Positions 1,613-50,607 of a stretch of DNA of 64,000 nucleotides are shown one piece after another. The stretch lies in NCBI GenBank assembly GCA_002269645.1, contig NIVC01001971.1, positions 62,001-126,000 on the forward strand, given 5' to 3'. Position numbers and translations under genes: made by a program. The notes under the pieces are model-generated. The model saw only the letters and a program-made list of their open reading frames with translations, was not told the origin of the DNA and made no database searches. Source of the DNA: Macrostomum lignano (Eukaryota). Within the stretch, counting starts at the first letter, position 1. Every line of letters starts with the position of its first letter.

Positions 1613-4600
1613 ACGATGGCCGCTCAGAAAAGAAATCAACTTGGCGCGTCTCTGGCCTTGGCCGCCAGGCAGAGTCTCAACGACGAAGAGCTGGTGAGTC
1701 AGTGCTTAACTGGGAGAATTCCACCATGATTGGGGAATTCCCATTGATATGATTTATTGTCAGAATTTATTGAATCCAATTCGATCATTATTATTAAGGA
1801 ATCCCTATGTGGCCATCATTAGAGAATCCCATTTATGACCTTTGGAAAATCCCTATATCGTTTTGATAGGGAATTCCAACCTCCATGAAGAACGACCCCT
1901 TTGATAGGGAATCCCAAATGCCATTATTGAGAAATCTCTAGACTGCCTTGATGGGAAGCCCCATCAACCAGAATCCTATCCGCTATGAGAGGGGAATCCT
2001 ATCCCGTCTATCCTCTATGAGAGGGGAATCCTATCCCGTCTATCCTCTATGAGAGGGGAATCCTATCCCGTCTATCCTCTATGAGAGGGGAATCCTATCC
2101 CGTCTATCCTCTATGAGAGGGGAATCCTATCCCGTCTATCCTCTATGAGAGGGGAATCCTATCCGCTGTGAGAGGGAAATCCTATCCGCCATGAGGGGGG
2201 AATCCTATCCGCCATGAGGGGGAATCCTATCCGCCATAAGAGGGGAATTCTATCCGCCATAAGAGGGGAATCCTATCCGCCATGAGAGGGGAATCCTATC
2301 CGCCATAAGAGAGGAATCCTATCCGCCATGAGAGGGGAATCCTATCCGCCATGAGAGAGGAATCCTATCCGCCATGAGAGGGGAATCCTATCCGCCATGA
2401 GGGGGGAATCCTATACGTCATTAGGGGGAATCCTATCCGCCATAAAAGAGGAAACCCCTCTGTTGTGAAAGAAAAACCCCATAAGTACGAGCGTACGAAT
2501 AGACGTTAAGAAATATTCGCATTCTCACCCAACAGAAGTCGCACGTGTACAAGAAAACTCTGCAGGCAGTCTGCTACCCAATCAGCTGTACAGTGCCGCA
2601 CAGCTTTCAAGTTTGGTCGGCCACCAGTCCCACCTACTGTCACGAGTGCGAAGGCCTGCTGTGGGGCATCGCCCGTCAAGGCGTCCGCTGCAGCCAGTGC
2701 GGGGTTAAGACGCACGAGAAATGTAAAGACCTGCTGAATGCCGACTGTCTGCAACAGGCGGCTGAGAAATCCTCCAGACACGGAGCCGAAGACAAGTCGG
2801 CCGCGATTCGGCAAGCGATGCAGGTGAGATGGTCATTCGTAATTTGATAATATTGGAGGAATGCAGGCTTGAGGGCCTAATGGGGCGGAAGTAATGAAGC
2901 AGGACTGACTAAGAGTGGAATCTATCTGGTTCCTTTCTGATATCCGATATTGGGAAGCTAATAAACAACTCTTTTTCTGCAGTGGGTACTGCCACTATCC
3001 ACTGTCTTTAAGTAAATCTGGTCACTACCCACTGTCCTTCAGTAGGTCTGGTCACTACCCACTGTCCTTCAGTAGGTCTGGTCACTACCCACTGTCCTTC
3101 AGTAGGTCTGGTCACTACCCACTGTCCTTCAGTAGGTCTGGTCACTACCCACTGTCCTTCAGTAGGTCTGGTCACTACCCACTGTCCTTCAGTAGGTCTG
3201 GTCACTACCCACTGTCCTTCAGTAGGTCTGGTCACTACCCACTGTCCTTCAGTAGGTCTGGTCACTACCCACTGTCCTTCAGTAGGTCTGGTCGCTACCC
3301 ACTGTCCTTCAGTAGGTCTGGTCACTACCCACTGTCCTTCAGTAAGTCTGGTCACTACCCACTGTCCTTCAGTAGGTCTGGTCACTACCCACTGTCCTTC
3401 AGTAGGTCTGGTCACTACCCACTGTCCTTCAGTAGGTCTGGTCACTACCCACTGTCCTTCAGTAGGTCTGGTCACTACCCACTGTCCTTCAGTAGGTCTG
3501 GTCACTACCCACTGTCCTTCAGTAGGTCTGGTCACTACCCACTGTCCTTCAGTAGGTCTGGTCACTACCCACTGTCCTTCAGTAGGTCTGGTCACTACCC
3601 ACTGTCCTTCAGTAGGTCTGGTCACTACCCACTGTCCTTCAGTATACACTAATAACCCTAGAATTTCATTTTAGAATCCTAAAAATTATCTGAAAAATGC
3701 GAAAAAATAACATATTTTGCATCTTGCAGGAGAGAATGCAATCTAGAGAGCAAGCTCGACCAGAAGTATTCGAGCTCGTCCGTCGAGTATTCGGTGTCGA
3801 CGAAGCGAGCCATCGGGAGCAGCTGCGCGCGGTACAACTCTCCATTCTAGAGGGCAGCAGCAACTGGAGCGCCAAGATTGCCATCACTGTGATTTGCGCG
3901 CAGGGTTTGATAGGCAAAGATAAAACTGGCACCTCCGACCCCTACGTCACTGTGCAGGTGGGCAGGCTGAAGCGTCGAACAAAGACTGTTCCGCAAGAAT
4001 TGAACCCAACCTGGAATGAGAAATTCTACTTGTGAGTGAAAAGTACTTTTCGACTATATAGAATAGAAGAACGTACTAAATTAAGCTACTTTTTTCATCA
4101 CTTGATTACAGCGAGTGTCACAACTTTTCCGACCGAATCAAAGTTCGAGTTTGGTAAGTCGATTCCATTTTATTAAATGTACGAGCTGACTAAATGTTGA
4201 TTATCAGGAGCTTGGAGCAGAAAGCAGTGTGTTACAAGCTGAGATTTGTGTCTTTAACTGAGATTGGTGTGTCTGTAGCTGAGATTGGTGTGTCTGCAGG
4301 TGATATTGGTGTCTTTAGTTGAGATTGGTGTGTCTGCAGCTGATATTGGTGTGTCTGTAGCTGATATTGGTGTGTCTGCAGCTGAGATTGGTGTGTCTGT
4401 AGCTGATATTGGTGTGTCTGTAGCCGCAGAGATTGGTGTGTCTATAGCTGTGATAGGTGTGTCTGTAGCTGAGATTGATGTGTCTGTAGCTGAGATTGGC
4501 ATGTCTGTAGCTGAAATTTGTGTCTGTAGCTGAGTGTGTCTGTAAGATATTTGGTATTAAAAGTTGATGATGGATACTTTTTGTAGACTAATTTTTGTCT

Positions 4601-7600
4601 GCGCCTAATATTTTCCAGGAAGTTCAATTTTGATTTCATTAAATTTAAAGACACGCTTTGTTTGCTTAAAAGGAAAGTACAAGTAGTAATTCATTTTTGG
4701 CTTTCATTAGTTCGTATTCGCAATTGCGTACGATTACTATTTGAAAGACAAGTTACTGAGGTCTGTCAGATTAGCTCCTAAAAAGAAAAGTGCCCAATAA
4801 CACCCAAAAAATTGCTATGATAAAAAAGGGACGAAGACAACGATCTGAAGTCAAGAATTCGTCAACGACTCACCAGAGAGTCCGATGATTTTCTCGGTCA
4901 GACTCTGATCGAAGTTCGCACTCTATCGGGCGAGATGGACGTCTGGTACAACCTGGGTAGGTTGGCCACTCCCCTAACCCGATTGTCTCTCCACTAACTC
5001 ACCCGGTTGCTAATAACTGTGTTAACTAACTCTACACGTGAGTTAAAACCCAGTTCTCGAAATCTCTTCTCGCTACTGCTAGTCTACCTGCCAAGTCAAA
5101 CCGAAAAATGTCTGTCTTTATGTGTACACTGTAGTTACGTCTTTGCACTTCTCTAGTATCGTGTGTCTAATAAGACGGGCAACTTTGACACAGTGCTCGA
5201 GTGTTAATTGTCTGACGCAAGATATTACGTGTGGCCGAAGTGAAGTTCAATGATTTGGGGTTAATGGGGTGGAGGCTAACGGGCCGACCAGAAAATCGAT
5301 AACGGTACACCATCAAGTTTACAATTCGGGGGGTTGGCCCAGTCAAAAGCTACGCTGGTATAAAGTGGATTGGAAAGATCGGGGCTAAGTGGGGTGGGGG
5401 GTCAACGCGCCGACCAGAAAATCGATAACTTAACACGCCCAGGCTAAATGAACAGCGGCAAAAACTATTGTAGCAAAGCGCGCCTGCCCATCGTGGATAA
5501 AAGGTTTGGGGTAAAGGGGTTTAACGGGACCGACAAAAAATCGATATGACATCCACCCAACTCACACGCCCAGGCTAAAGAATGCAAGTCAACTTGAGAA
5601 GACAGTGTCTAGTGTGTGACAACAGTGTGACAAATAGGAACTAATCTCCTTACGCATCATTCATACCTTTTGAAAAATTAATCAGTTTAAATGCAATTTA
5701 AATTCGATGGTAAGAAAACCTTATTTACGGCTATTCTGGCTTATTCTCAGGACACACGGTACTCCTATGTTGTTTTAGATTTTTGAGGTTGCACCTTGCT
5801 TTTCGGGTTTTGCGTCTGTAGCTGAAAAAACCGAATCCCGAAAGGCAAAGGAAATTGAAATGATAAACATATCGAATGATAGACTGCTGTAACCATTTTA
5901 TTTTTCTAGCAATTTCAGTAGCCAATTTCAGTAGCTAATTTGTATTCAGTACGTTTTAGAAGAGTTTTTTATCGTGTTTCATACTTCCTGTGATACTCGT
6001 ACCTATAGCGATAGCGTGGACTTAAAAACAACAATGAAAAATATTTCTTTTTGATTCCAAATTAGGCTAGAAAGACTGACAGACCTTTAAAAAGGTAGCT
6101 ACTCGTAGTCAAATACGCACTCTGTCGCCTATTCAATAATCAGGGATGAGGACAACGACCTGAGGGCTCGAATCCGTTCAAAGTTAACGTCCGAGTCGGA
6201 CGACTTTCTCGGTCAGACAATGATCGATGTGAGCAAATTGTCCGGCGAAATGGACGTCTGGTACACTCTCGGTAGGTTGCAAGTGGACCCAGCTTGAATC
6301 GGCTGTGTTGCTAAGAACCAACTATCGAAGTTTAGGCATTATGGTTAGGCAGAAGTTTTAGTTAACAATACAAACTATTAAACACTTTGGTGCTTCCTTA
6401 AAGCCTATTTACTATATTTGTTCTGTCATTTAATGTTGTAAATATTTCTTACATTTTTATACATTGTCAAATATGCATGTTGCTACGCTAGGCAGTTGTT
6501 TTGCAACAAGACGACTGGTAAGGATATGAATGACACCTATTTTATGGAAATTTGTGTCAGGCTAGTATTTTATCTCGAAAAGCCTGAGAAATACATGTAC
6601 TACATTGGAGACTAATTAGCAAGCGTGATTTTATAAAAACTCACTTATAACTTTCTACACATCCTGTTACATTATAAATGTTATAAAATATTTTATTGCT
6701 TGATACAAAACTTCGGAACTTGCTTAGAATCAGTGCAATATTATTTTTCCCAATTGTAAAGTTGCTAAACTTGGGAATCAAACTCCGATCAAACGCATTA
6801 CAACTGCCCCGTATTACCTGTGCATTTTGAAACGTAATTAAGCCTCTAGAAAATCTGAAAAACTTCTCTTTGCTCCCAATGGTCCATACCTGTACAGAAA
6901 ACAGTTGCGTTTTATTTTTTGCAATACGCTCGTAACTATTCACTTCAGAGAAGCGAACGGACAAGTCGCTGGTGTCGGGCGCTGTGCGATTGCACATCAG
7001 CGTGGAAATCAAAGGCGAAGAGAAGGTCGCGCCGTATCATGTGCAGTACACCTGCTTGCATGAGGTGAGGCTCGATATTTGCATATTTTACTCGTTCAAA
7101 CAATTTCTTTTCATTCGTTTAAAAATGGATTAAAAGTTAAAATGATACCATTAGCTAAGGGAGATCGACAAACTGAGTTCTTCAAATTTGTCTGGTATAT
7201 TTTCTCAAAACGGATTGCCAGATAAATATCGCTCCCTATCGTCTCAAGAACAATTTAAGAACGTTCTTAAGTCGTTATTTTATTGCCTGTTGAAATAAGA
7301 TCTCTTAAAAGTCCATTTCGTGATATGCAAAGTAAATGCCTGTTGCTAGATATGTCTAGCTCGTATTTATATTTAATTAAAATATAGATGTCTTAAAACC
7401 TTAAAACAAGAGTCTCCAGGCATGACACTACACACAGCTTGACACTATTCACGAACCAAACTTACAGAACTTATTCCACTACATGTGCGAGACATCGAAA
7501 CAGGATGGTAAACAGGAAGTCCGACTGCCCAGACAAGCCATCGGACGAGGCGAGAATGCGTGGAAAATCTACTTCGAAGCTGAGATGCAAGAAATCGTGG

Positions 7601-10600
7601 ACGAGTTTGCGATTCGATACGGCATTGAGAGCATCTATAGAGCGATGACGTGAGTGAAAAATGCTCATTTGTTTATTTAATCGCAGTGATTTGCTAATTA
7701 AGTTGGTTGAATACACTGTCTGACCGTGATGCTCTACATGTATGCTTTGTTAAAATGCTTCGTACAATTATTTCCCTGTTTTGCGAAGCTATTTCATCTT
7801 GTCTAAACTTTCGATAGTACGTTTGGTAGCCACGCCATTTGACTGTTGACCACTTGAATGCCACCGATCAAGTACATCTATCTACCTTGCCTTCTTACTT
7901 GCACGCCAGATTTCCCGTGTACATGACATGTTGGGCTTGTAAGGGTGCATCTTAAAACGAATTTAGGCAGTGATCCTTTGGTGAAAAAAATTTCTTCCAA
8001 TATCTTAGAAACAAAAGTGCATCGTTTTCAGGAGAAGCAATCAATTTAATAAGCTAAGGAAGTTCACATTCGTTATACGAAAAATATGCAAGATTGACAT
8101 TGAGTACTACAGTGTAATCTGGATGTTCCTGCCCTCTCGTTAATTCCTCTCTCCCTCTTTCTTATCCTTATCCTGCATGAGTTCTGAGAACACTTGCTGT
8201 GTATATGAATGCTTTGTATTCTGTACAAATATTTCTATCCGCTGCCACTTTCATTCTGGGCGATGCGTCTATTGATCGATCCGTTATTATAAGACAGAAT
8301 CCAGGGAGAGGGAGGAGAGAGAGAAGGGGAGCCAAGGCGCGGAAAGAATTTCCTGGTCAAATTTCTCCTCTGCTCAACCGCGCCCATAACAGTTCCTGTT
8401 CTCTCCTGACCGCTACAGCATCCCCTTTTTTCTGTTCATTCTTTCTCCTCTCACCGCGCTTCTCCCTCTGTGATGCCCCGCAAGCAGCTGCAGCCTCGTT
8501 TTATCATTTATTCTTGGCCTATCGTCAGGCCTCTCAGAAATCTCTTGCACTCTGTCTCTCTCCCCATCGGAGCCACTTCAGTACCTCTTCTATAGCCGAT
8601 CCAATGGTTGATTCGGGTTTCGCACTAGAAATGCAATACTGCAGAAAAAACCTAATGTCAAACACATTCAACGTGTTTTACGTTCAGTTCAATTCATCTA
8701 TACTGAACCCACTGCCAGGCGCTAGACAAAGGCTGCAGAGAAATCGTTAACAAAGATGACGATTCTGTGTAGTTTTTGCAACCCAATTATCTTGTATGCA
8801 TTGAACTTCAATCGGGTTGGAGTAAAATTTTCAGTAGAACTACTAGCAATCTAGTGCCCCTTTTTTGGGGCGGCCAATAATCAAAGGACGAAAATTATTT
8901 ACGTGAATCCTTTTAAGAGACAAAGACACATTTTCTTAAAAGCATTCATTCTTCAGTTTCGTAAATCCCATTGTTCGAGAAAATTTATCAGGGACAAAGA
9001 TTTTGGGGAGCTAACAAAAAATGAGATACACTGGTGGACATTGAAGAGATCCACTACTACTGTTCAGTAGTGTATTATTGCACACTATTATTCCTTCGAT
9101 TTAGTGCGCAATTAAATAATATCGTTACCCGCTCGGGATGCAAGTTGCGTAACTTGCAGTTGCGATCGGAGAGAAAAAGAGGATACTTTTCAAAGTCCAG
9201 CGTTTATTTTTAAATAAGCTACATGTAGCTTCTGACTACTCAGCTTTGACATCTCAGCAATTCCCCCCGTAAGCCTTGACATCTCAGCAATTCCCCCTGT
9301 AATGACTCGGGAGTCAGTATTGATTTTGCAGTGCGAAAACGCTTGGACCTCCAAGAAGGGTGAGAGTGCCTATATATATTTGGGCCCTCAGGCCTCAGCC
9401 AATCATGTGTGGCTACGTAATTGGTATAAAATGCATACGAGCTCGTAAAAGGGGAGAGGTAAGCTGTGCAGAGTACAGTAAAAGAGTACAGTGAGTGAGC
9501 ACCCCGCACTGCTAGGCACCCCGTTTAACAACAACAATTGAGTGCAGGGCATGACACCCCATAAGCTGTGACTTCTCAGCAATTCTCCCGTAAGCCTTGA
9601 CATCTCAGCAATTCCCCCCGTATTACTCAATGTGAGCAATACTTAATGTGTTATGTGTAACGGTGGCGTCCCTGGAGCAAATAGCGCATGCTGATGTACA
9701 CTCAGCAACATGTTAAAGTTTCCACCCCAAGAACTGTTGGTCCACAAGTAGCAGCTTTAATTCAACTTAGCCATAAAAGCTCATTCACACTGCCCATCTG
9801 ATGAGCAAGCAAATCACACGACCAATGCACAAAGAAATCAAATTTGATGTTAAGTTGTGTGATCACACAAAAATGGGCCTTATATGATAGTGGTGTGAAC
9901 GAGCATAAACTTTCTAGTCTCTCCTAACCAGCCTAAGCTAGGTCTTGTTACGCAAAGTTCATCACCCGCAGTCGAGACGAAAACCGCGCGCGTGTGATGT
10001 GAATTGCGTCAACTTGGAGCTGAAATCTGAGAACAGTTGACCACTGGTTTCGGGGTGGTCACAAACTTTAATATGTTGCCGGGTGTACATTCAATGTACG
10101 CTGCCGTCTAATTATTTCTACCCCCAGTTTTGTGTACCCTCTCTCCTCCCAGCCTCAGCGCGGGCTCTAATTGGCTAAAGGTTGATTTATATTCGCTGAC
10201 CAACAAGAGTCAGCCAATGTTTGGCAGTCCAATTTGTTTACGAAAAATGACCAATCTGAGCCTGACCGTGCCAGTCTGTCTTGGCGAGCGTAGGAGACTG
10301 TCTGCCTGCGAGCTTCAACATGCACAGCAGCAGCAGCAGCAGTTGCAGATTAATCCAGTTGAACCTCGACGGCGCAGCATAGCTGTGCCTAGCGTCGCAT
10401 CTTCCGAGACCGAATCACCGTCGCATTCAACCTCGTCCCCTTTGCCGTTCAACTCTCCATCTTTCAGGCATTTCTCCTGTCTGACAACAAAATCGTTGAG
10501 CACCGGAGTGCCAGCCGTGATGTCCAATCTGCTTGCTAACATCAACGCATTCTATGCGCACAGCGCCACCGGGAATTCCGTCAGCGCTAACGACCGTTTC

Positions 10601-13600
10601 GCGGCGTCCAACTTTGGCAAAGAGAAGTTTGTGAAACTATTGGATCAGCTGCACAACTCGCTACGAATCAGTTTATCAGTGTACCGAAACTCTTTCCCCG
10701 CCTCTCAACCTGAGAAACTGTTGGATCTGAAATCAACAGTGGATCTGCTCACCAGTATTACTTTCTTCCGGCTCAAGGTGAGATGCGTTTTGATTTGATT
10801 TGATTTTTGATATTTGTTTTATTTTCAAGTATTATCAAGGTTTTTAGCTATAGGGCCTCAAAGACGGGGAAACGTCCTTAAGTTTCTGATTTGACTTGTA
10901 ATCAATGTATACATACTCGTAGAATTCAGATTGAGGTGTCTAGCGGCCACAAATGCAAAAAAATCGAAGTGTCCGTTAGGAAAAATAGAATTGCCTCAAT
11001 TTTAGGCGTAAACAAGTTGATGTGAATTTCGAAACAGATCTTTTTGTAGTCATACTCGTATATAAAATAAGTCTCGACAGACTTTTGTTCTTCTCCGGTC
11101 ACTACGATTAAATTGAAGGGGTCTTTTAATTAATTAACTAGAAACGAGAAAATAGCAATTCACTTTCTCCCAATTCGCAGGTTCAAGACGTAGGCAGCGT
11201 GCCTCGAGCGGGCAGCGTACTGAAGGAGTGCGCACTCAACTGCTTGAAAACCACGTATCAGTTTCTGTTTGAAAACTGCAACGAATTGCACCAGCGGGAG
11301 TTCCCAGCAGCAGCTGCGGCCGCAGCAACAGAGGGGGCGTCGGAGTCGGCTAAGTCGGGCCCTTCGCCGGACTCTCTGGACTTTTGGCACCGACTGATCG
11401 AGCTGGTGGTGTCGGTGATCGAGGAGGATCGAAACAGCTACGCCCCGGTGCTAAACCAGTTCCCTCAGGAGGTCCACATTGGCCAGCTGAGCGCCTCCGC
11501 AATGTGGGATCACTTTAGTCAGGATTTGATGTACGCTCTGCAGGAACACGAAGAGAAGAGGCCGTGCAAAACGTCCGAGTACATGAACCTGCTGTTTAAG
11601 GTGGGCTTCTGTGGATTTAGATTTTTCCTTAATGATTTCTGCGCACTGTAAGTGTGACCTTTGAGCACAGAACTAGATTTGTTACTATCCTATTTTCAAT
11701 TTGGCGTCTGTTTTGGGTTCGCATAAATTTTTCATTGGTTCGGAGCTTCTGTCTATGGCCAAATATGACAGATCGGTGGTCTCGTCTCGAAACTGGACCA
11801 TCTTTGATCCATAGTGAATCAAGCCGTTTTGTTGTGCCAGCCTGAGTTACGTATTTATTATTTTTATGAAATCTCGTTATGCTTTGTCATAAGGCCTTAA
11901 ATGATAATGTAAAAATTTCACTACAGGTGAAGTGGCTCTACAACAAATACGTGGCAGACGCTCCGCCGCACAAAGGCTCCGTACCTGGCTATCCACTCTG
12001 GTTCCAGCCGTTCGTACTGCAGTGGCTAAGCGAGAATGATGAAGTCTCCATGGAGTATCTGCACAGCGCCTATGCTAGGTAAGGTTTTGAACTATATAGT
12101 TTGCAAGTCAGTTTCAGTTATTTCAACTTCTCACTAGATCATTTGAGAGGTTGCAGCGCACAGAATGAACAGCAGCGGTATTACTCGTAGATAACCCACC
12201 AAGACGAATGTCGACCCTCGGCTCACAAGGTGCCAGTCACGCCGATTCTTGAGCTCGCCCACGCTGATATGCGTAGACAGGCCCTGACTTTCTCGTCGTC
12301 TAGCATGTACACTCTCTGAGCCTTGGGGTAGTCCTCAATCGCACCAGCCCCGGTCAATATTCGTTGCACCTCCCCAAATCTATATACGAGCTATGTACTT
12401 GCATGCAATCGAATCTGGGTACTATATAGCGCGAGAGTCAGATGCGCTAACTGCTGTGCCACTCTGCCCCCCCCCCCCCGATATAGACTTATCTTTGATT
12501 TTACTATTGAGGCCTCAATTCGCACAAGTGTATCATTCAAAATGAACATTTGAAATAACGAAACTCATTGTTTGTAGCGACTCACTTCTAATAAGACCCA
12601 AAATGACAACTTTTAAGTAAAAGTCGCGAATTTGTTTATGTAATATTGTTTTTTTTCGCCATCAACAGAGACCGGAAAGACAGCTTTCAAAAGAGCTCAG
12701 ACCACGCACTGTTCAGCACGTCTGTTGTTGACGTATTTACTCAGCTCAACCAGTGCCTAGATGTAGTAAAGAAGCTGGAATGTCCAGATCCAGCAGTTGA
12801 AGCCGCTTTCATGAGTCGATTCAGCGGCACAGTTGTCAAAGTTCTATTCGCGTACGCCGACATCATCGCTAAAGACTATGGCAACTTTACTGGCCAGTCT
12901 GGCAAAGCCTGCGTGCTTATGAACAATGTGCAGCAGGTTCGAGTGCAACTGGAGAAACTCTACGAAGCCATGGGCGGCCAGGCCATGGAAGCTGAGACCA
13001 AGGACAAGCTACAGGTAATAAATTTTTCAATTGCAAATTTTGTGTTTGCTTAATTGTAGCTTCTTTCGTGATTACGTGATAATTAGGACATTTCAAATAA
13101 TAAAAAGCTTTAATGCTAAAAGAAAAAAATGACTACAAGTACAACATACAACAAGAACTAGTAGATATCGGCACCAAAAATGGAGACCGGACGGGAGTAA
13201 TACTTCAGATCAAACCGTCCATTTCTTAGTCAACTGGTCCGACAAGTTATCGATCGCAGTGGGTTTAACTCGAAGCTTTACTTCTCAGGCTCCACTCCGG
13301 CGCTTAAGCCCTTTTTCATTAGAAGACAAAAAGCAAAGTCTTTAGTGAAAACCCTCGAGACCCCTACAAACTCTGCAGGAGCTGCAAGATCGACTGAATA
13401 CCGTACTGGACGATCTGGCGGCGAGATTCGTTTCTACAAAATCTAGCGAAATTGTCGCTGCAGTCCGTGAGGTCGGCTGCCTGCTGCACAAACACGTGCG
13501 CGGTGGAGCCGGCAGCAGTGGCGGTGGGTCAGGAAGCACAGATCCGCAGGCGGAGGCTGATATGATACTGCGGCCACTGATGGAGCTTTTGGACTCGTCT

Positions 13601-15861
13601 CTGGGCATGCTGGCTGTCGAATGCGAGAAGGCAATTCTCAGGCGACTCTTGAAGGAGATGTGGCGTGTCACCGTGGCGGCTCTAGAAAAGGAAGTTGTGC
13701 TGCCACCAATCAGCGATCCTAGACAGGTGAGCAGTTTTTAGAAGCGCTTAGTTACCGAGCAAACTTTATATAAACAAAGAGGCAATGTCCCCTTTTTAAA
13801 TTTAAAGTTTTACACCAAGTTTACAGAGCAAACTAATTTTACTTGAGCAGCATAACGTTTGCCACTTGATTGAGTTTTCAGCCAATCATGATTTTATGTT
13901 TAGGACGCAGCCTCAGAGCCACGGCTACTAGTCTTCCATAATCAAATTTCAGCTATTCCTCAATCTGAGCATCCCAGCTAAGGCCAAAGTGGCCGGCGTT
14001 AGCCAAGGCCTGCTAAGCAACATCTCCAGCATATCAACCCAGGTGTCCAATGTAACATCCGTGCCAAATATTAGCAACGTGTCTAACCTGTTGCAGGTAA
14101 AGAAAGCTAAGAGGCGCGTTGAAAATAGCGTTGCCGAACGTCGCACCTAGTCTTGCTCACTTGATCCATGTTGTTTTGCACTTACGGAGATCGCAAATTT
14201 CCATAGATCTCTGGCTATTTATTTACTAACAGTAGCATCGAGAGACATACACAAATCTTTGCCAATCGGCGATCTTATCTACATGAATGTTGTGTCTTCA
14301 GTCATTTGATTTGTCTGTCGCCTTTAATCTCCTATTGCTTTCAGTTAAACTTTCGTCCAGCAGCTTGTATTTCAAGCAAATCCCTTTGCTTGCTTATGCT
14401 GTCTAGCATCCAACCCAGACCCTTAATATGAGTATAGTGCCATTTCTATTTTTTCGTTACCGCAAATGCGCAAAATGTGCCGTTATTTTTCTATTTACGG
14501 TGTCTTTCTCATGAGTTAATCTTTATTATTGCACTATATTTCACCGTTTGTAGGAGTTTCGTTTCACACTACAATATTCATCCATTCTTGCATTCCAGCT
14601 ACATGTCAGCGACAATAGCTTGCACTTTTAACCTTTTTAAATATCCTCTCCAATCAACAGGACACTCTATCAAAGGATCTAGAGAAGACTATGTCTCCCA
14701 GGCAGTGCGCAGCGATCCAGGTAGCCCTAGAAACTGTCCGGCAATATTTCCACGCTGGCGGCAACGGTCTAAAGCTGGCTTACCTGGAGAAGAGCGCCGA
14801 GTTGCAGTCGTTGCGCTACGCCTTGTCGCTTTACTCTCAGACGACCGATTCGCTTGTGAAAACGTTTGTAGCAACACAGGCTGGCCAGGACCGGCCGGCG
14901 GTAGACGAACCTGTCGGCGAGGTGTCAATCCAGGCGGATCTTTTCAGGCATCCTGGCTCGGGCGAGGTCAAGGTCACTGTTAAAGTCGTTGCAGCTAATA
15001 AGCTTCAATGGGACACCAGCTCAATGTTTCGACCGTTTGTTGAGGTTAACTTGATTGGGCCGCATCTGAGCAATAAGAAGCGCAAGTTTACCACGAAGTC
15101 CAAGAATAATTCGACATCGCCAAAGTACAACGAATCGTTCAGTTTGTAAGAAAAGTTTTTTCTGTGCAAATTTTTCTGTTTTGATAGTTTATAAACGGAC
15201 CTTTGGAAACGTAGGGACCTTCGGAAACGTAGGGACCTTTGGAAACGTAGGGACCTTTGGAAACGTAGGGACCTTCGGAAACGTAGGGACCTTCGGAAAC
15301 GTAGGGACCTTCGGAAACGTAGGGACCTTCGGAAACTTAGGGACCTTTGGAAACGTAGGGACCTTCGGAAACGTAGGGACCTTCGGAAACGTAGGGACCT
15401 TCGGAAACGTAGGGACCTTCGGAAACGTAGGGACCTTCGGAAACGTAGGGACCTTCGCGATGTTCAAGACCTCTAGAAACCATCAGGACCTACTGGATCT
15501 TCGGGAGCTTTGCTATTCGCTATTGGAACCTTATTTCAATAGAATTCATTCCCTCAGCATTCTGGGCACTATTGAGGATCCCGAAGCATTCGAGCTGCAG
15601 ATTAGCTGCAAAGATTATTGCTTCGCTCGAGATGACCACCTGATCGGCGTCACAGTGCTACAGATCAAGGATATCATCGAGCAAGGCAGCTGCGCCTGCT
15701 GGTGCGCCCTGGGCCGAAAGCTGCAGCTCGATGAGACCGGCTGGACAATCCTTCGAATTCTGTCGCAACGGCCTAACGACGAGATTGCGGCCGAATTTGT
15801 TCGGCTGAAATCGGAGCAACGGCAGGACAATCCGCACGGCCTTTGGCTGGGCAAAAGTTAG
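1613..15861 (+). CDS. unc-13: Unc13/Munc13 synaptic vesicle priming protein, C1-C2B-MUN-C2C region (about 1215 aa in window; likely 5'-partial)
   Basis: Exons with GT-AG boundaries and consistent phases: 1613-1693, 2536-2823, 3730-4031, 4112-4153, (4829-4956 or 6144-6271), 6949-7064, 7468-7649, 10468-10777, 11181-11600, 11927-12078, 12669-13014, 13379-13726, 13953-14096, 14661-15145, 15558-15861 (TAG). Munc13 hallmark peptides: HVYKKTLQ, C1 [29 protein letters not shown]2[17 protein letters not shown] and [43 protein letters not shown]2[10 protein letters not shown] and GSCACWC. Confidence 0.97.
1970..2450. repeat. Intronic minisatellite, 32-bp units then 23-bp units (GAGAGGGGAATCCTATCCGCCAT)
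   Basis: Visible tandem array in an Unc13 intron. Confidence 0.9.
2990..3643. repeat. Intronic minisatellite, 30-bp unit (ACTGTCCTTCAGTAGGTCTGGTCACTACCC), about 21 near-perfect copies
   Basis: Two identical units per 60-nt line; source of ORFs 2915..3652 and 3008..3649. Confidence 0.97.
4238..4545. repeat. Intronic minisatellite, 21-bp unit (GCTGAGATTGGTGTGTCTGTA)
   Basis: Visible degenerate tandem array. Confidence 0.9.
4829..4956 (+). CDS. unc-13: Unc13 C2B exon, variant A (mutually exclusive candidate)
   Basis: 128 nt, AG/GTAGGT; encodes (W)[42 protein letters not shown], close to the canonical Munc13 sequence; acceptor (TAAAAAAG) lacks a pyrimidine tract. Confidence 0.9.
6144..6271 (+). 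CDS. unc-13: Unc13 C2B exon, variant B (mutually exclusive candidate)
   Basis: 128 nt, CAG/GTAGGT, same phases as 4829-4956; encodes (W)[42 protein letters not shown] with no stop or indel. Confidence 0.85.
9298..9556. mobile_element. Solo LTR (Gypsy-like) in an Unc13 intron
   Basis: TGTAATG...CATGACA termini, 4-bp TSD CCCC (9294-9297 and 9557-9560), internal CCAAT (9399) and TATAAAA (9425-9431); removing it restores a ~30-bp tandem repeat (GACATCTCAGCAATTCCCCCCGTAAGCCTT). Confidence 0.7.
10247..10467 (+). CDS. unc-13: Candidate alternative N-terminal coding extension (internal first exon) of Unc13
   Basis: Stop-free frame from 10130 runs in frame into exon 10468-10777; ATGs at 10217 and 10247 (AAAAATGA); peptide has RRRLS, RRRS, Q6 and an S/P-rich tract; branch point plus pyrimidine tract plus CAG acceptor at 10127. 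Confidence 0.5.
12185..12468 (-). mobile_element. tRNA-derived SINE
   Basis: Minus-strand head GGCAGAGTGGCACAGCAGTTAGCGCATCTGACTC...CCCAGATTCGATT with A/B-box-like motifs; central CCCCAAGGCTCAGAGAGTGTACATGC block shared with SINEs at 34.9 and 54.3 kb. The 3' end is approximate. Confidence 0.6.
15197..15457. repeat. Intronic minisatellite, 18-bp unit (GGACCTTCGGAAACGTAG), about 14 copies
   Basis: Visible array in the last Unc13 intron; gives the GTFGNV repeats of ORF 15181..15861. Confidence 0.95.
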
Positions 15862-19658: not shown

Positions 19659-22600
19659 TGTGGCAGTTGGGTGCCACTAGTGAAACGTAAATAACAGTTA
19701 TTTAAAACAACTCTCTAAAACGCATGCAAAAGAACATTAATTTTTTTTCGTGTCCACTATATGATTTTTTTGGTTCCTCATTTTCATCAAGTGGACATCC
19801 AGCTGCTGAACATTACTTCCATCTTTTGGACAGGGCTTGTTTCCTCCCGTTGGAAATTTGTTTAAGTTTTCTTTTCCCCATTGCGACAAAGCCGTCCACC
19901 CGAAGTGTCCATGCCATGTATTTTTAATCCAGCAGTCTGTCCAGTGTTTCCCCCAATTAATGTTCATGCTATTTTATCTACTATTTATTCTGCTTGTGAC
20001 GAGTCGTCCCAAGTATCCTTGGTTAGTGTTTTTGTTGGTGTTTTTTGGTTGGTGTTTTGTTTGTGTTTTTGTGGTCTCTCTCTCTATCTCTCTTAGTTCT
20101 GACATTACATTTACCAACTTGAGTTTTACTTCTATTTTCTAAACAGTCTTGCGCACCGGCGCCCGTGGATTTCATCTTCGTCTGGAATTTAATATTAAAA
20201 GTTAGTTTGATTAACAATACTAATAATTTTACTTAATAAGCCTGCTTCATTTAATAATAAAGACAATTAATAACTCCACATTTAACCGTTGACTAAAGCC
20301 ATAGTATTTCTTGAGTCATTTGCCCGTGGGGCATAAAATAACCAAAGTTCTCATCTCAAAGAAAGCTCTGAGACCATTAACGTTCCGTAATACGTAAATT
20401 ACGGTGGTGGCAGCAACTACCCTACTGACAGTAACAAGCTCTGCAAGTCGACGCAAAATTTACGGTGTCTGAATTTACGGTGTTTCATCACTTTGAACGA
20501 CCGCGCCGCTCTACGACCGCTCCGCTACGATTACGACTACCCTCCCCCCGGACTTGAGAACCCGGCTATCGGAGTAAAACAGGAGAAGAATTTCGTTGTG
20601 ATTCGTCTGCGCGATTTCTCCGGATTAATTCGTGCGAACTCAACGCCGGTGGCAATTCAAACGCGGAATCCGCCCATCACATCGTGGAAAGCTCACTTCA
20701 TGGAAAGCTCACTTCATGGAAATTTGAAACAACTCTCTGTGCAGACAACATGATCAACCAGGCCTTTATTCAAAACGATACAAAACAACTTTGGAACTTA
20801 TTAAAAACACCAAATCCCTCAAACAACAGAGTAACAATTGATGAAAAATTTGTCATACACTTTCAAAATCTTGTAACTGAACAAGACAGCAGCATTCGAC
20901 TATCATACAATCTTCACCTTGACAACCCTATTCTGGCTGATTTAGAGGATTTCAATGCCCCATTCACCAAAGAAGAAGTTATAAAACATATCAAAAAGCT
21001 CAAAACCGACAAAGCACCTGGGCACGATAAAGTATATGTAGAAACACTCAAATACCTCGAGAACGAACTTGCTGACCTCCTATGCTCACTTTTCAACGAA
21101 GCACTCAAACAAGGAACCTTCCCAACTAGTTGGATAACAAATACACTTCATCCGATTTATAAAAACAAAGGCAGCAGTGCCGACCCCAACAATTACAGAG
21201 GAATCTGCATTCAACCAATTCTTGGCAAGCTCTTTTGCCAAATTATTAAATCCAGACTCGAAAACCTAGCATACGCAAACAATCTTATATCAAAATACCA
21301 ATACGGTTTCAAGCCCAATCACAGCACAATCGAACAATGTTTTAATCTTTACAACATTATAAACCAATCCATCTACAACAAAGAAGAACTCTTTATTGGA
21401 TTTGTTGACTATGAAAAAGCCTTCGATAGCTTAAATCAACCGACCCTTTGGTGCAAAACGGATAATCAGGGTATTAAAGGTCAAATGACAAAACTTATCA
21501 AGAACATGCATAAAAATGCCTGCTTCATTCTAAAAAAAGATGATGATGATGAAACCCAGCCAATCCCAATATCTAAAGGTGTTCTTCAAGGCAACCCTCT
21601 CTCTACCATTCGTTTTGAACTATATATTGACGACATTGTTGAATATCTTGAACTCTCTAGCGCTAGGCGCTCTCTTACGAGATCTGCTTTCCCACTCATC
21701 CTACTCTTTGCAGACGATCAAGCCATTCTAGCTAAAAACAAAGACGAACTTCAAGACACATTTACGACTATGGAAAATTACTGCAAACAAAATTACTTGA
21801 AAGTAAACGCAAGCAAAACAAAGTTTATGCAGGGCAATACCAGACAAAAAAACGACACAGATAGCATTGCTACAAAAATATACTACGACAACCAAGAAAT
21901 AGAAGAAGTAAATGAATTTAAATACCTGGGAATTATTTTTGAACCAAAAACAGCTTTAAAAAATGTATTGAACACCAAACTAAGCAGGGATATACAGCCA
22001 TGTTTTCCCTACTCCATAGGGTAAAGAATACGTCCCTAGACATCACACTCATTCGCAGACTATTTGACGCGCTTGTTACCCCCGTTATCACTTACGGTTG
22101 TGAGCTCTGGGGCCCTCTGGCTACCATGTCTGATACAAAAGCTATTGATAATATTCAGCTGAAATTCTACAAATATCTCCTCAATCTACCAAAATTTGCT
22201 AGCAACAGTGTGATATCATCAGAACTTGAGCTTACTCCAATCTCTCAACGAATCGCTAAAACCTACCTCATCTACTGGCTGAAGATTAGACACAAAAAAC
22301 TCTGCCAAACGACTCTAGAAATTTTCTACTCAAGCACTGGCCAAAAAATCCATGGAAAATGAATGTACTAAAGAAACTAGAAAGTATAGACCTAAAAGCA
22401 CTAACTGAAGATAAACTTTCCCAAAGCTTTAATAACGAGAAATACCTAGTGAAAAAGCACCTCAAGATACACAGAGAAAGAGAACTTAGCCAAAGCTAGA
22501 GAATCAGCAACATATTAAACTCTACAAAAACGCCTATCTCTACAAAAAAATCTGCAGGCCCGACCTTTCAGATTACTTCCCATGTACATTTAGAAACAAA

Positions 22601-33423: not shown

Positions 33424-35517
33424 ATGCCACCTCCATCAAAGCCCAACCAGAAGACTCAGAAGAAGCCGCTGCCGCCCCTAGTTGACGTCGAGGACAAGGA
33501 GGAATACACTGGAGACCGGCCCTTCTGCGTCTACTATTGCATGTGCGGCCAGCTCGCCCTCATCATTGACTGCCCGATTGAACGGCTGCCGCAGCGACCG
33601 CGCGACAGCTCTCGGGTGCTCGACAGGCGGCGTCGGGTTTTCAAGGCGCACTTTGATCCGGTAAGGGTCGCTGACTGTACTCATTTCGCATCGTTTTATG
33701 TTGTCGTCTGATCCACTATTGAACTACCATTAATAGAATTAAGCTACCATAGAACTGAGCTACCATAGACATAATTGATCTACTATAGACATAATTGAGC
33801 TACTAAAGACATAATTGAGCTACCATAGACATAATTGAGCTACTAAAGACATAATTGAGCTACCATAGACATAATTGAGCTACTAAAGACATAATTGAGC
33901 TACTAAAGACATAATTGAGCTACCATAGACATAATTGAGCTACCATAGACATAATTGAGCTACCAGACATAATTGAGCTACCATAGACATAATTGAGCTA
34001 CCATAGACATAATTGAGCTACCATAGACATAATTGAGCTACCATAGACATAATTGAGCTACCATAGACAGATTTGAGCTACCATAGACATAATTAAGATA
34101 CATGATACAATTAATTGATTTCGCATCAAATTCTGTAATAGACGAATTCACAATGGCAAAAGTATTTCGGTCACCCAGGTGCACCGGGAGGAGGCTCTCA
34201 TTCGCTGGCCAGACGATGCCGCAGTTGAGCGTCAAATTCGTCGCCGATGCAAGCGCTGCGCTTTGCCGCTGTTCTACCAGCATCCGGACGAACTTGGCCG
34301 ACTGGACCCGGCCAAGCCGGCCTTCTTATTGCCGGACGCTGTCCGAGAAACTGCTGGCAATAGCGGCCAGGAGGGAGCAGCCGCGGCTGCCAGCGCCGAA
34401 GCCATTGTTGGCCGGCTTAATCAGGATAAGAAGGTGAGTTTCTTGCGTGTGTGTCTCGTTACTCTGCCCACCGCCCTCTAGTAGTGTATAACGGTTGGGA
34501 ATCTGTAGGCTAGTCTAAAATGGGCTGTAGCCTAGTGGTTAGAGCGTCTGAATCACGACTGAAAGGTCGGGGGTTCGATTCCCGATCCACTCGGAACAAT
34601 TACTGTCCTTGAGCAAGACACTTAACTCTGCATTGCTTCAGTTCACATAGCAGTAAAATGGGTGCCAGCATTAGCTGAGTAATTGAGGGTGTGTGGCGAC
34701 CTCCCCCCAGTCCTTGGACTGAACAGCCGTACGCAGCCTTCAGATGCGCCGCGCAATAGCTGCGGCTGAGCTGTTGGTTGCACAACTATTATTATTTGTG
34801 CAATTATTAATTGCATAAATATAATTGCACAAAGATAATTACTATTACTATCTCAAAACTGAGGCGGAGGGCCGTGGCCCAGTGGTCTAGCGCGGGGCTC
34901 TGATTTGCCAGCGGCCCAGGCTCGATTACCAGTGCAGTCACACTAATTTGTGGCTAAATTGGAATTAGCGCCCTGAGCCGACCCCCAAGGCACAGTGAAG
35001 TGTACATGCCTAAGGATAAATAAAGTTAGGGCCGCTGTGCACTCCTGTGTGAGTGTGTGCCTGTGCGTATGACTGCGTACGTATCCGCACGCTTGTGTGC
35101 CTGCTCAGGTGAGTCTGCGGAATGGGCAGTAAGGCCTCTCGCTGCCCCTAATAAAAAGCTCAGAACTTCACAAGTATTTACAAGTTCAAAACTTTGCAAG
35201 CTCGTAATTTTTCAAAGTTAAATTTGTGACTTTGCTGTCAAAAAATTCGAATATTTAACATTCGTCATTAATTACAGGTGATGCTAACCAGACGACGTCG
35301 CGATATGGGCAAGTTCTCCTCCGTGACCGTGTCCACTATTGAAGCCGATCAGGAGGAGGTTGAGGCCAGAGAGATCGCCGACTCGTACGCCGCCAATGCT
35401 CGCATAGTTGAGAAGCAGCTGCTGCGCAAAGGCGTCATCAGGAAGCGATTAGTCGAAGAGCGCAATCAGGATGCGCAGGCGAAACGTCAGGCTAGGGGGA
35501 CGCTTATCGACTATTGA
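33424..35517 (+). CDS. STEEP1: STEEP1/CXorf56 (UPF0428) family protein, 243 aa
   Basis: Exons 33424-33660, 34179-34433, 35278-35517 (all phase 0, GT-AG). Motifs [77 protein letters not shown]. Confidence 0.95.
33745..34100. repeat. Intronic minisatellite, 20-bp unit (CTACCATAGACATAATTGAG)
   Basis: Visible array in STEEP1 intron 1. Confidence 0.95.
34522..34797 (+). mobile_element. tRNA-derived SINE with CORE-like domain
   Basis: Head GGGCTGTAGCCTAGTGGTTAGAGCG...GGTTCGATTCCC (A and B boxes); then TGTCCTTGAGCAAGACACTTAACTC...CAGTAAAATGGG resembling the MIR/CORE domain; (ATT)n tail. Confidence 0.75.
34869..35156 (+). mobile_element. tRNA-derived SINE (family also at 54140-54441)
   Basis: Head GGGCCGTGGCCCAGTGGTCTAGCG...GGCTCGATT; body matches the reverse complement of 54140-54441. 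Confidence 0.8.
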
Positions 35518-40311: not shown

Positions 40312-42627
40312 ATGTTCGCTGTTATCGCTTGCGGCCGCCTCGTACAGACCGATTTCCAACAGGTGGACGCTAACAAGTTCACTCTGACTATACCGGCTGC
40401 TGACAAGGTCAACCACTTGGTATTCTTTCTTACCGGCCAATGTCCACTGCCCGATGGAGCCGCCGCTGCCGTGTACCTCGGCTGGCCCCAGCCGCCGCCC
40501 AGCCCGCCGGAGCCTGTCTGGAGCTTCATCGGTCACCTGACCAACGAGAAGCCTAGCGCTATATTTAAAATCGCGCGCACCAGACCGCAGGATCACGATC
40601 CAAATCATCCGTTTCTAGCTAATCATTTTGCCACTGGCAGTTGGACTGATCTCACCTGTGTGCAGGTGCGCCTTATCGCCGATCGATGATTTTACTGTAT
40701 CTCAGCAGAATTTTAAAGAGTCTCTGAACCCCAGACATTAGAGGTCCCCTCGCATTGAAAGTGTGAATATTCATCCTAACTTCAGCCCTCGCCACCCCAA
40801 CCAAAACGTGCACATGGCGTCAAAAATCTCTGCTGCCTGAGTCCCCCAACCCCAGTCACTTGAAAGTTGCCCTTACAAAAGCTTTGAGACTCGTTTCCAG
40901 GTTTTATTTTAGCATTAAAAGACTGGACCGCATCATCGTGTTCCCCATAGTTCTCATATTTTGTGCTCCTAGTTATTTTTAGACTCAATCACTAAGTTAG
41001 TTTGGGGTGGCCCTGAAAAGGGCCGTTTGACTTTCTAGTTTCCAGTCACCTTTTAATAAACAACACACTGTTCTACCCCCCCCCACCCATAGTCTCAGTT
41101 TTGAGTGGCCACTATCGCTAGATACAGGGAACTCGTAGCTGGTATGACTCTAGTTAAGCCGAGTTGGCGCCGGTTAGTACCAGGGCTGAAATAGGTTGGG
41201 TACCTAGTTTTAACCCTAGCATTATTGCAGCCACACCCGCCCTATGTGACCACTTTGTGTATGCAGGGTCAGGCTTGTTTGGGGAGAAAGAAATCATATT
41301 TTTAATAGCAGCACTACAATTGATATAGATCGCAGTATTAACAGGACTTATCTTCGTTATGTATCATTTCGTTTATGAGTTTATTTAAGGTCAAATTTTC
41401 GCAACTTGAACTACATCTTGAACAATGTGAACTTTCAAGCTTGCAAAAATGACCCACAGCAAGAAGGCAAGCAGCAGTTATTCTCTGAGCAAAGCAAGTA
41501 GGCACACGCTCTCACAGTGTACAGCGGCCTTGTGACTTTCTCATTCTTTGGCATGTGCACTCTCTGTGCGCCTTCGCCTCAGTGGAATGTGACCACTCGA
41601 TAGTAACAACAACAACACCAGTAAAAAAAACGATGACAACATAAATAACAACAACTGCAACAACTGCAACAACAGCACCAGTAATAATAACAACAACGAT
41701 AACACAAATAGCAGCAACAACAAAACCAACAACAACAACAACAACTGCAACAACACCAGTAATAAAAACAACAACGATAACACAAATAGCAGCAACAACA
41801 AAACCAACAACAACACCAGTAATAAAAACAACAACGATATCACAAATAGCAACAACAACAACTGCAACAACACCAGTAATAAAAACAACAACGATATCAC
41901 AAATAGCAGCAACAACAACTGCAACAACAACACCATTAATAAAAACAATAACGATAACACAAATAGCAGCAACAACAACTGCAACAACAACACCAGTAAT
42001 AAAAACAATAACGATAACACAAATAGCAGCAACAACACAGTAATAAAAAAACAGTGATATCACAAATAGCAGCAGCAACAACAACAACACCAGTAATAAA
42101 AACAACAACAATAAAGACAACAGCAGCAAAACACGCTGCTTGGGTCTTCTGAAAGCTGCGTCTCAGGGCGCGCCTCCGGACCAGGTCTGCCGGTATGCTG
42201 CGGCTATGATGCAGTCTACCAGCTGCAGTCGCCTTAGATCTTGCTATTGAAACCTCACTATTTCGCACAACTACGAGTATATAATTTAGCAATTGCAGAA
42301 TTAATCCTTTGCTAAGACCCCTAGTATCATTAGTAACAGTTTTTGAATAATATTAAATACAATATCCATTTGCAGGTAGGTATCTCCATAGAGCCGGTGC
42401 AAACGGTAGCAGGCATGACTCCGCCAGCGGGCACTCAGGCCGACTCCACGCCAACTATGGTAGCCTTCTCGCAGCGTATGCTAGAGAGCCTCGTGAACTA
42501 TTTGAGCAGTTTTGCTACAACTCCGCCTGGCGCTACTGAGTCCTACGTGCCAATGTCGGCCGTGACCAGGTGGTATGAAACTTTTGAACGGCGTCTGCGA
42601 CAGTTTCCCGACTTTTGGAAGACTTAG
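40312..42627 (+). CDS. HIKESHI: Hikeshi/OPI10 (Hsp70 nuclear import carrier), 201 aa
   Basis: Exons 40312-40665 and 42376-42627, phase 0. Motifs MFAVIACGRLVQTDFQQV, NHLVFFLTG, TNEKPSAIFKI, QVGISIE, WYETFERRLRQFPDFWKT. Confidence 0.95.
41004..41028 (-). other. Histone-mRNA 3' stem-loop consensus, with no histone ORF upstream
   Basis: Minus strand reads AAACGGCCCTTTTCAGGGCCACCCC (6-bp stem, TTTC loop, canonical flanks). Confidence 0.6.
41590..42125. repeat. (AAC)n-rich low-complexity array in the Hikeshi intron
   Basis: Visible; source of the poly-L/V/C ORFs at 41512-42292. Confidence 0.9.
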
Positions 42628-47254: not shown

Positions 47255-49030
47255 TGACCTCTGTTGACCCCTCCCCTGCGATCCTTCAGTGACCCCTCCC
47301 CTGCGATCCTTCAGTGACCCCTCCCCTGTGATCCTTCAGTGACCCCTCCCTTGCGATCTTTCAGTGACCTCTGTTGACCCCTTCCCTGTATCCTTCAGTG
47401 ACCCCTCCCCTGCGATCCTTCAGTGACCCCTCCCCTGCGATCCTTCAGTGACCCCTCCCCTGTGATCCTTCAGTGACCCCTCCCCTGTGATCCTTCAGTG
47501 ACCCCTCCCTTGCGATCCTTCAGTGACCCCTCCCCTGCGATCCTTCAGTGACCCCTCCCCTGTGATCCTTCAGTGACCCCTCCCCTGCGATCCTTCAGTG
47601 ACCCCTATCCTGTGATCCTTCAGTGACCCCTCCCTTGCGATCCTTCAGTGACCCCTCCCTTGCGATCCTTCAGTGACCCCTCCCCTGCGATCCTTCAGTA
47701 ACCCCTCCCCTGTGATCCTTCAGTGACCCCTCCCCTGTGATCCTTCAGTGACCCCTCCCCTGCGATCCTTCAGTGACCCCTCCCCTGTGATCCTTCAGTG
47801 ACCCCTCCCCTGTGATCCTTCAGGGACCCCTTCCCTGTGATCCTTCAGTGACCCCTCCCCTGTGATCCTTCAGTGACCCCTCCCCTGTGATCCTTCAGTG
47901 ACCCCTCCCTTGTGATCCTTCCCTGTGATCCTTCAGTGACCCCTCCCCTGTGATCCTTCAGTGACCCCTTCCCTGTGATCCTTCAGTGACCCCTCCCCTG
48001 TGATCCTTCAGTGACCCCTCCCTTGCGATCCTTCAGTGACCCCTCCCCTGCGATCCTTCAGTGACCCCTCCCCTGTGATCCTTCAGGGACCCTTTCCCTG
48101 TGATCCTTCAGTGACCCCTCCCCTGTGATCCTTCAGTGACCCCTCCCCTGTGATCCTTCAGGGACCCTTTCCCTGTGATCCTTCAGTGACCCCTTCCCTG
48201 TGATCCTTCAGTGACCCCTCCCCTGTGATCCTTCAGTGACCCCTTCCCTGTGATCCTTCAGTGACCCCTCCCTTGTGATCCTTCCCTGTGATCCTTCAGT
48301 GACCCCTCCCCTGTGATCCTTCAGTGACCCCTCCCCTGTGATCCTTCAGTGACCCCTCCCCTGTGATCCTTCAGTGACCCCTTCCCTGTGATCCTTCAGT
48401 GACCCCTCCCTTGTGATCCTTCCCTGTGATCCTTCAGTGACCCCTCCCCTGTGATCCTTCAGTGACCCCTCCCCTGTGATCCTTCAGTGACCCCTCCCTT
48501 GCGATCCTTCAGTGACCCCTCCCCTGTGATCCTTCAGTGACCCCTTCCCTGTGATCCTTCAGTGACCCCTCCCCTGTGATCCTTCAGTGACCCCTCCCTT
48601 GCGATCCTTCAGTGACCCCTTCCCTGCGATCCTTCAGTGACCCCTCCCCTGTGATCCTTCAGTGACCCCTCCCCTGCGATCCTTCAGTGACCCCTCCCCT
48701 GTGATCCTTTAGTGACCCCTCCCCTGTGATCCTTCAGTGACCCCTCCCTTGTGATCCTTCCCTGTGATCCTTCAGTGACCCCTCCCCTGTGATCCTTCAG
48801 TGACCCCTCCCCTGTGATCCTTCAGTGACCCCTCCCCTGTGATCCTTCAGTGACCCCTCCCTTGCGATCCTTCAGTGACCCCTCCGCTGTGATCCTTCAG
48901 TGATCCCTTCTACCCCATCCCCTGTAATTATTCAGTGACCCCTCCCCTGTGATCCTTCAGTGATCCCTTCTATCCCATCCCCTGTGATCCTTCAGTGACC
49001 CCTTCTATCCCATCCCCTGTGATCCTTCTT
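47255..49030. repeat. Minisatellite, 25-bp unit (TCAGTGACCCCTCCCCTGTGATCCT), about 70 copies
   Basis: Visible array downstream of PDHA1. Confidence 0.96.
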
Positions 49031-50500: not shown

Positions 50501-50607
50501 GTGAGCATTCACATAGGAACTGTGTGAACGTGTTGCGATTAATAGACAATAGGATGTGTAACAGCCTAGCAACACTGCCGTTTTCTGCGCATCCCACGCG
50601 CCGAGTC

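Follow-up and report, generated by a model that had tools for sequence, protein, structure and literature searches.

An exon pair in the C2B domain of an Unc13 gene

Unc13/Munc13 proteins set the number of release-ready vesicles and the activity-dependent change in release. The locus described here raises the question of whether one unc13 gene could make two forms of this priming factor by exchanging a single exon inside its C2B domain. It lies in a stretch of 64,000 nucleotides (nt) (contig NIVC01001971.1, positions 62,001 to 126,000 of the forward strand; hereafter the window), in which two exons of 128 nt, denoted A and B, stand in tandem within the conserved core of the gene. We consider it probable that A and B are a tandem-duplicated, mutually exclusive pair kept by selection, through which one gene would yield two priming factors that differ in their response to Ca2+ and to membranes containing phosphatidylinositol 4,5-bisphosphate (PIP2).

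The exon pair was placed within an Unc13 gene on the forward strand by tblastx against the locus of the annelid Owenia fusiformis and by tblastn with Macrostomum lignano proteins. The 1199-residue product assembled from the junction model contains the Pfam domains C1_1 (residues 22-72), C2 (146-253 and a second stretch), and MUN (469-1006), and the domain order C1 - C2B - MUN - C2C is present. The product aligns collinearly with M. lignano Unc13 and with the rat Munc13-1 structures 5UE8/7T7C. A search of 5.8 billion proteins returned two M. lignano Unc13 paralogs as the top homologs, which are 74% and 72.5% identical to the window protein and share 70% identity with one another.

An AG precedes each of exons A and B and GTAGGTTG comes directly after it, with phase 1 at both ends. 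Translation of the joined exons showed that the frame stays open when the upstream exon is joined through A to the downstream exon, and likewise when it is joined through B. Joining A to B leads to a stop after ...WYNLGMRTTT, and skipping both leads to a stop after ...RIKVRV; transcripts of either kind hit a premature stop because 128 is not a multiple of three. An original prediction, made from the sequence alone, had described two 128-nt exons of the same phase with GTAGGT donors, located between exons ending in RIKVRVW and starting with EKRTDKS, and had proposed that including both or neither would break the frame. Our coordinates, peptides, and translations agree with it, and the coordinates of all four of its proposed splice junctions (4153->4829, 4153->6144, 4956->6949, and 6271->6949) were correct.

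The two exons are identical at 92 of 128 nucleotides (72%) and at 32 of 42 residues. Their similarity extends from the acceptor AG to slightly beyond the donor, and the 60-nt flanks are just 32-33% identical on each side, so that the resemblance is confined to the exon and its splice sites. The first 17,000 bases of the window, which hold the whole unc13 gene, contain exactly two copies. Third codon positions account for 21 of the 36 nucleotide differences, and the nonsynonymous rate (dN) is 0.16 while the synonymous rate (dS) is saturated. We simulated 36 random substitutions in 20,000 trials, which gave a mean of 22.4 amino acid changes and a minimum of 14, as compared with the 10 observed (P<5e-5); a stop codon arose in 72% of the trials. 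Because far fewer residues changed than expected, and most trials acquired a stop, the resemblance between A and B is not due to chance. A tandem duplication would have produced the two exons, with selection maintaining both.

In the intron between them, at 5238-5580, there are three direct repeats of ~126 nt (GGGG...CCGACCAGAAAATCGATA...), which were not found in the corresponding M. lignano intron.

Table 1 Features of the unc13 exon cluster in the window and divergent exon copies in other contigs.
Feature	Position	Strand	Remarks
unc13/Munc13 conserved core (C1-C2B-MUN-C2C), ~15 coding exons	1613..15828	+	tblastn with M. lignano P0121, junction model
Constitutive exon: C1-C2B linker, first C2B strands, loop-1 Ca2+ ligands (rat D705/D711)	3730..4031	+	single copy in window
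Constitutive exon ending ...RIKVRVW	4112..4153	+	donor GTAAGT; ends in phase 2 (TG, then G: split codon)
Intron 5' of exon A	4154..4828	+	21-nt minisatellite at 4237-4534; purine-rich poor acceptor (GATAAAAAAG, then G)
Exon A, 128 nt: canonical loop 3, helix, and strands	4829..4956	+	IEVRTL...WYNL; donor GTAGGT
A-B intron, 1187 nt	4957..6143	+	without conservation in M. lignano
Exon B, 128 nt: variant loop 3, helix, and strands	6144..6271	+	IDVSKL...WYTL; donor GTAGGT
Intron 3' of exon B	6272..6948	+
UGCAUG (Rbfox-type motif), sole one in exon cluster	6474..6479	+	203 nt 3' of exon B
Constitutive exon starting EKRTDKS..., end of C2B	6949..7064	+
Divergent copies of the exon in other contigs	L006:8368-8496; L065:2630-2755; L067:2191-2316; L069:1109-1234; L079:960-1091; L049:959-1084; L055:2335-2460

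The exon pair encodes the third Ca2+-binding loop with its amphipathic helix

We placed the exon on the protein structure by alignment to the solved rat Munc13-1 structures 5UE8, 7T7C, and 6NYC. The exon corresponds to rat W756-L798, which comprises the loop-3 Ca2+ ligands (D757, D759, and D775/776), an amphipathic helix, and the next strands. The helix, which is unique to the Munc13 C2B domain, includes the position of rat R769. Molecular-dynamics simulations and mutagenesis show the helix entering the membrane while its basic residues rest on the lipid head groups; R769 is required for priming, and the R769E mutation weakens membrane binding and priming (PMC8648301). The location in the Ca2+/phosphoinositide-binding loop of C2B that had been predicted is borne out by this alignment.

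The acidic Ca2+ ligands are intact in both exon versions (ESDD in both), and the C2B ligands D705, D711, D757, D759, and D775/776 of rat are all present. The helix segment is ungapped and of equal length in A and B, and a basic residue is kept at rat position 769, as R in A and K in B. In exon B, the helix has one basic residue fewer (R772S) and, in the next strand, a basic residue has moved from 786 to 787. The alignment also bears out the claim that the acidic residues are kept and that the basic loop-3 helix and the next strand differ. A swap of the two exons would exchange 42 residues spanning loop 3, the membrane-inserting helix, and the next strands. The A- and B-type priming factors would then probably differ in membrane/PIP2 and Ca2+ responsiveness, with a resulting difference in release probability or short-term plasticity.

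Both exons are conserved in Macrostomum lignano

Exons A and B are both present in both of the old M. lignano paralogs. At the locus of one of these (L009, assembly GCA_002269645.1, contig NIVC01000460.1), A and B are separated by an 894-nt intron and each has a GTAGGT donor. In L009 coordinates, A spans 48830-48957 and B 49852-49979, with the upstream exon ending at 48564 and the downstream one starting at 50598. Only the exons align between the window and this locus; the introns of the cluster share no stretch longer than 13 nt. Window exon A matches the A exons of the two paralogs at 98% of amino acids, and window exon B matches their B exons at 86-91%. Between the window and L009, the A exons differ at 29 nucleotides and one residue (dN 0.026), and the B exons differ at 23 nucleotides and six residues (dN 0.083, dS 0.97, ratio ~0.09). 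Exon B is somewhat less constrained than A, yet clearly under constraint. Five differences between A and B are fixed in all three genes, namely K763R, Q768S, R772S/T, R786S/N, and T787K in rat Munc13-1 numbering. The original prediction had taken both exons to be selected and had proposed to look for exon B in relatives. Both points stood up: B is intact in the two paralogs, comparable pairs occur in an annelid and in a bivalve-like contig (see below), the ratio for B is far below 1, and the differences are biased to synonymous sites.

An A-rich poor acceptor (AAAAAAG, then G) is found on exon A in the window (4822-4840) and on exon B in M. lignano (L009:49845-49863). Because the poor acceptor sits on different exons in the two loci, the weaker exon of the pair may differ from gene to gene.

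Frame incompatibility and candidate regulation of exon choice

Frame incompatibility, both of A with B and of skipping, is the sole mechanism of exclusivity shown in the window. A premature stop this early, with many junctions still to its 3' side, should trigger nonsense-mediated decay (NMD), and transcripts with both or neither exon would be removed in this way, so that each surviving mRNA would carry exactly one of the two.

The same stop could be read differently. The second exon might serve mainly as a poison exon, in which case joining A to B, with a stop seven codons into B, would lower the dose of Unc13 through NMD and the B protein would be irrelevant. NMD-coupled splicing is common among neuronal genes. 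However, a poison exon needs no conservation at the protein level, and B keeps the Ca2+ ligands, the fold-critical residues, five fixed B-specific residues, and its low dN/dS. We consider this explanation very unlikely, and some leakage to joined A and B may still occur in a mutually exclusive pair.

Three other mechanisms of exclusivity were considered and found no support in the window. Steric hindrance does not apply, as the A-B intron is too long at 1187 nt (compared with 75 nt in the bivalve-like contig L010). Incompatibility of U2 and U12 sites does not apply either, as the sites are GT-AG throughout and belong to the U2 type. As to competing RNA pairing, only AT-rich inverted repeats of 14-23 nt with 73-88% complementarity were found (e.g. 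4809-4827 with 5897-5915), and M. lignano conserves none of them.

A G at +4 marks the donors of both A and B but just one of the 12 other modelled donors of the gene, and the acceptor of exon A is a purine-rich AAG. Such weak but conserved GTAGGT donors fit a regulated choice of exon. In addition, the sole UGCAUG of the exon cluster lies 3' of exon B in the window, and the sole UGCAUG of the M. lignano cluster lies 221 nt 3' of exon B. With four species pooled, the intron 3' of B contains 8 UGCAUG motifs against 1.7 expected and the other cluster introns contain 2 against 2.8, under a partition chosen post hoc. Downstream Rbfox binding usually promotes exon inclusion. Because the position of the motif 3' of B matches between the two flatworm loci, we propose as a lead, not a result, that an Rbfox-type factor would promote exon B through the UGCAUG ~200 nt downstream. 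The arrangement resembles that of Rbfox-regulated neuronal exons, with a UGCAUG ~200 nt downstream whose position is kept between genomes with unalignable introns; it differs from them in being known in the window from a motif match, with post hoc statistics.

Gene models and alternative explanations

Several observations weigh against mutually exclusive use of A and B with distinct functions. The M. lignano protein models P0121, PAA82660.1/P0362, and P0363 contain exon A only, and exon B of M. lignano is seen solely in models that join A and B in frame by odd splice sites. Searches of the protein collection with a C2B query, a 726-residue query, and a profile of exon B gave no spliced transcript or protein with B alone; those matches that had B-like residues proved to be genomic open reading frames running through the acceptor. 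Comparison of the window with M. lignano gave no convincing or conserved docking/selector RNA pairing, and the placement of UGCAUG in the two flatworm loci alone reaches P=0.06, post hoc. Furthermore, the differences between A and B are mostly conservative, and the functional effect of a swap could be small.

The gene models and the protein search would be expected if exon B were an unused relic of the duplication, a pseudo-exon never included in productive mRNA. Yet B has retained an uninterrupted reading frame, its length to the nucleotide, and its two splice sites in three genes only 70-74% identical overall, and its dN/dS ratio of ~0.09 is found where the surrounding introns fail to align. 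Random drift at the divergence of A and B would also have introduced stops in ~72% of cases. A relic is therefore very unlikely.

The joined models could instead be taken at face value, with an alternative acceptor bringing A and B into one frame and giving a duplicated C2B loop. The M. lignano models P0122 and P0367 do read ...WYNLGRDEDNDL.... In the window, however, there is no AG where the 4 nt upstream of B would be added (sequence AATAATCAG, then G), and a duplicated segment of 43 residues would break the C2 beta-sandwich. P0122, P0367, and P0149 hold both exons through non-canonical joins or a retained intron, and P0149 joins A and B by a retained intron only, which is typical of ab initio artefacts where exons are mutually exclusive. 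The three models are probably annotation errors produced by the exon pair itself, and we regard joint inclusion in frame as extremely improbable.

Distribution and origin of the exon pair

Among the invertebrates examined, the 128-nt exon with identical boundaries was found to be old and widespread. It is present in single copy in Lottia, Echinococcus, Dibothriocephalus, Priapulus, and the contigs L007 and L008. In insects, mites, and nematodes, no intron interrupts this part of C2B. Tandem copies were found in Owenia fusiformis (L002 18251-18379 and 19216-19344), in contig L006, and in six metagenome contigs. A tandem pair is also present in the bivalve-like contig L010 (ENA ERZ24900295; 89% identical to Mytilus Unc13), at L010:10061-10392. 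Its two copies have 25 nucleotide differences, yet just two residue differences (N760D and Q768S), and the 75-nt intron between them is short enough for steric exclusion of splicing from A to B. The donors in Owenia are the same as those in the bivalve-like contig (GTGGGT for A, GTCAGT for B), which supports orthology of A and of B between the two phyla.

Among parasitic flatworms, the single exon of the cestodes Echinococcus and Dibothriocephalus has a B-like helix and an A-like strand. The helix at both cestode loci (L004:7942-8070 and L001:10703-10831) is of the flatworm B type (LRSKLRSKLTSE), and the trematode and monogenean proteins (P0202 and P0044) have an A-type helix. This pattern would fit differential loss from an ancestral flatworm pair.

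Whether the flatworm duplication arose independently of the mollusc/annelid pair, or whether both descend from one ancient lophotrochozoan pair, is a question of origin only, and we give independent duplication an even chance. Neighbour joining of the exon peptides put flatworm B next to the lone cestode exon and apart from mollusc/annelid B; with 42 residues, too few for the purpose, the tree does not settle between single and multiple origin. The donors also differ, with GTAGGT in flatworms and GTGGGT/GTCAGT in the annelid and the bivalve-like contig, and B-like Ala/Ser residues occur in the single-copy L007, L008, and Priapulus as well. On the other side, the flatworm and mollusc/annelid pairs have the same exon order, with the canonical copy first, and share the Q768S difference; B-like cestodes together with an A-like trematode and monogenean form the pattern expected from differential loss.

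Two further observations concern this part of C2B in other invertebrates. In Owenia, the loop-1 exon of C2B is likewise in tandem (L002:14134-14265 and L002:15875-16006), with TTTCAG acceptors and GTGAGT donors in both copies, and could form another alternative pair; a single copy of this exon is present in the window. In several invertebrate contigs, a highly divergent copy of the 128-nt exon, which has lost acidic Ca2+-ligand residues (e.g. DEDFN...ESHD and NEHHD...EGDE), lies beside the canonical one (Table 1). In these contigs, judging from the ligand residues, exon choice might switch Ca2+ binding off. A third, divergent copy of the kind found in annelid-like contigs was not present in the window gene, within the first 17,000 bases searched.

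Other features of the window

Five introns of unc13 contain minisatellites (405-1173, 1976-2443, 2993-3644, 4237-4534, and 15197-15457), with units of 18-32 nt and up to 33 copies. Downstream of the gene, an open reading frame of 446 codons at 20684-22024 (+) encodes a reverse-transcriptase domain (Pfam RVT_1, E 9e-31) and is probably a retrotransposon without long terminal repeats (non-LTR). Exons of a pyruvate-dehydrogenase-E1-like gene are located at 43730-44293 (+; Pfam E1_dh), and exons of a thioredoxin-domain-17-like gene at 50437-50950 (+; TXD17-like_Trx), where the frame continues into a long proline-rich PQIPI-KSP repeat. A match to the Rfam histone 3' untranslated region stem-loop was found at 40983-41029 (-) with 39.5 bits, above the gathering score, with no histone frame upstream on that strand. 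The window repeats at 34519-35142 and 54088-54437 recur at several places in M. lignano L009 with 82-88% nucleotide identity, and these shared interspersed repeats fit a Macrostomum origin of the window. Taken with the Unc13 homologs, they place its source among Macrostomum-type flatworms.

Comparison with known isoform switches

No account of alternative exons within the C2B domain of Unc13 came up in a full-text search of the literature, in line with the original prediction, which knew of no such switch in Unc13. Unc13 isoforms are known to alter synaptic properties, and the variants described are N-terminal (PMC11991699, PMC9282427). These variants, which include C. elegans UNC-13L/S, Drosophila Unc13A/B, ub/bMunc13-2, and the start-site variants of Aplysia unc13, use alternative promoters or N-termini on an invariant C1-C2B-MUN-C2C core. 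The A/B switch belongs to the same gene family but, unlike them, lies inside that core. A closer parallel in position is offered by vertebrate Munc13-1/-2/-3, among which the same helix positions vary (KQRFKRE, KQKFKRE, KQHFKKE, and KQRLKRE). There, the diversity comes from separate genes, whereas in the window gene it would come from exon choice. Vertebrate contigs have a frame that continues through RVW into DEDDD, and a second copy was not seen there, although no search aimed at one was made. The Munc13 paralogs confer differing release properties on synapses.

Mutually exclusive exon pairs are familiar in presynaptic genes, and a pair in the C2B domain of Unc13 is new as far as the literature search shows. 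The vertebrate exons 5a/5b of SNAP-25, a presynaptic SNARE, form such a mutually exclusive pair, which is thought to tune vesicle priming and release. Like A and B, they are tandem exons of equal length in a core gene of exocytosis, with one per mRNA and few residues that differ. The SNAP-25 pair, however, affects the SNARE motif and linker, and its usage and physiology have been shown by experiment, whereas the Unc13 pair affects a C2 Ca2+-binding loop and we infer its exclusive usage, regulator, and biophysical effect from anatomy, frame, and conservation.

Implications for Unc13 function in invertebrates

The loop-3 helix of C2B is one of the contacts that orient Unc13 on the plasma membrane. 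If the proposed switch exists, it would supply variants already tested by evolution for helix biophysics and for rescue experiments, namely the five fixed flatworm substitutions and the N760D and Q768S pair of the bivalve-like and annelid loci. Macrostomum lignano is amenable to RNA interference and transgenesis. The switch would also account for the faulty flatworm gene models that contain both exons.

More tentatively, a splice switch in the Ca2+/PIP2-sensing loop of Unc13 might predate the split of flatworms, annelids, and molluscs, and might yield two biophysically distinct priming factors in invertebrates with a single gene, chosen cell by cell and perhaps by Rbfox; in some annelid-like lineages, where the alternative copy lacks Ca2+-ligand aspartates, the switch could even turn Ca2+ regulation of priming on or off. 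We think this broader scenario possible but somewhat doubtful. In the Unc13 literature found, isoform diversity comes from the N-terminus or from separate vertebrate genes only. If the exon pair is used as proposed, invertebrates with one or few Unc13 genes would diversify the sensor itself as well.

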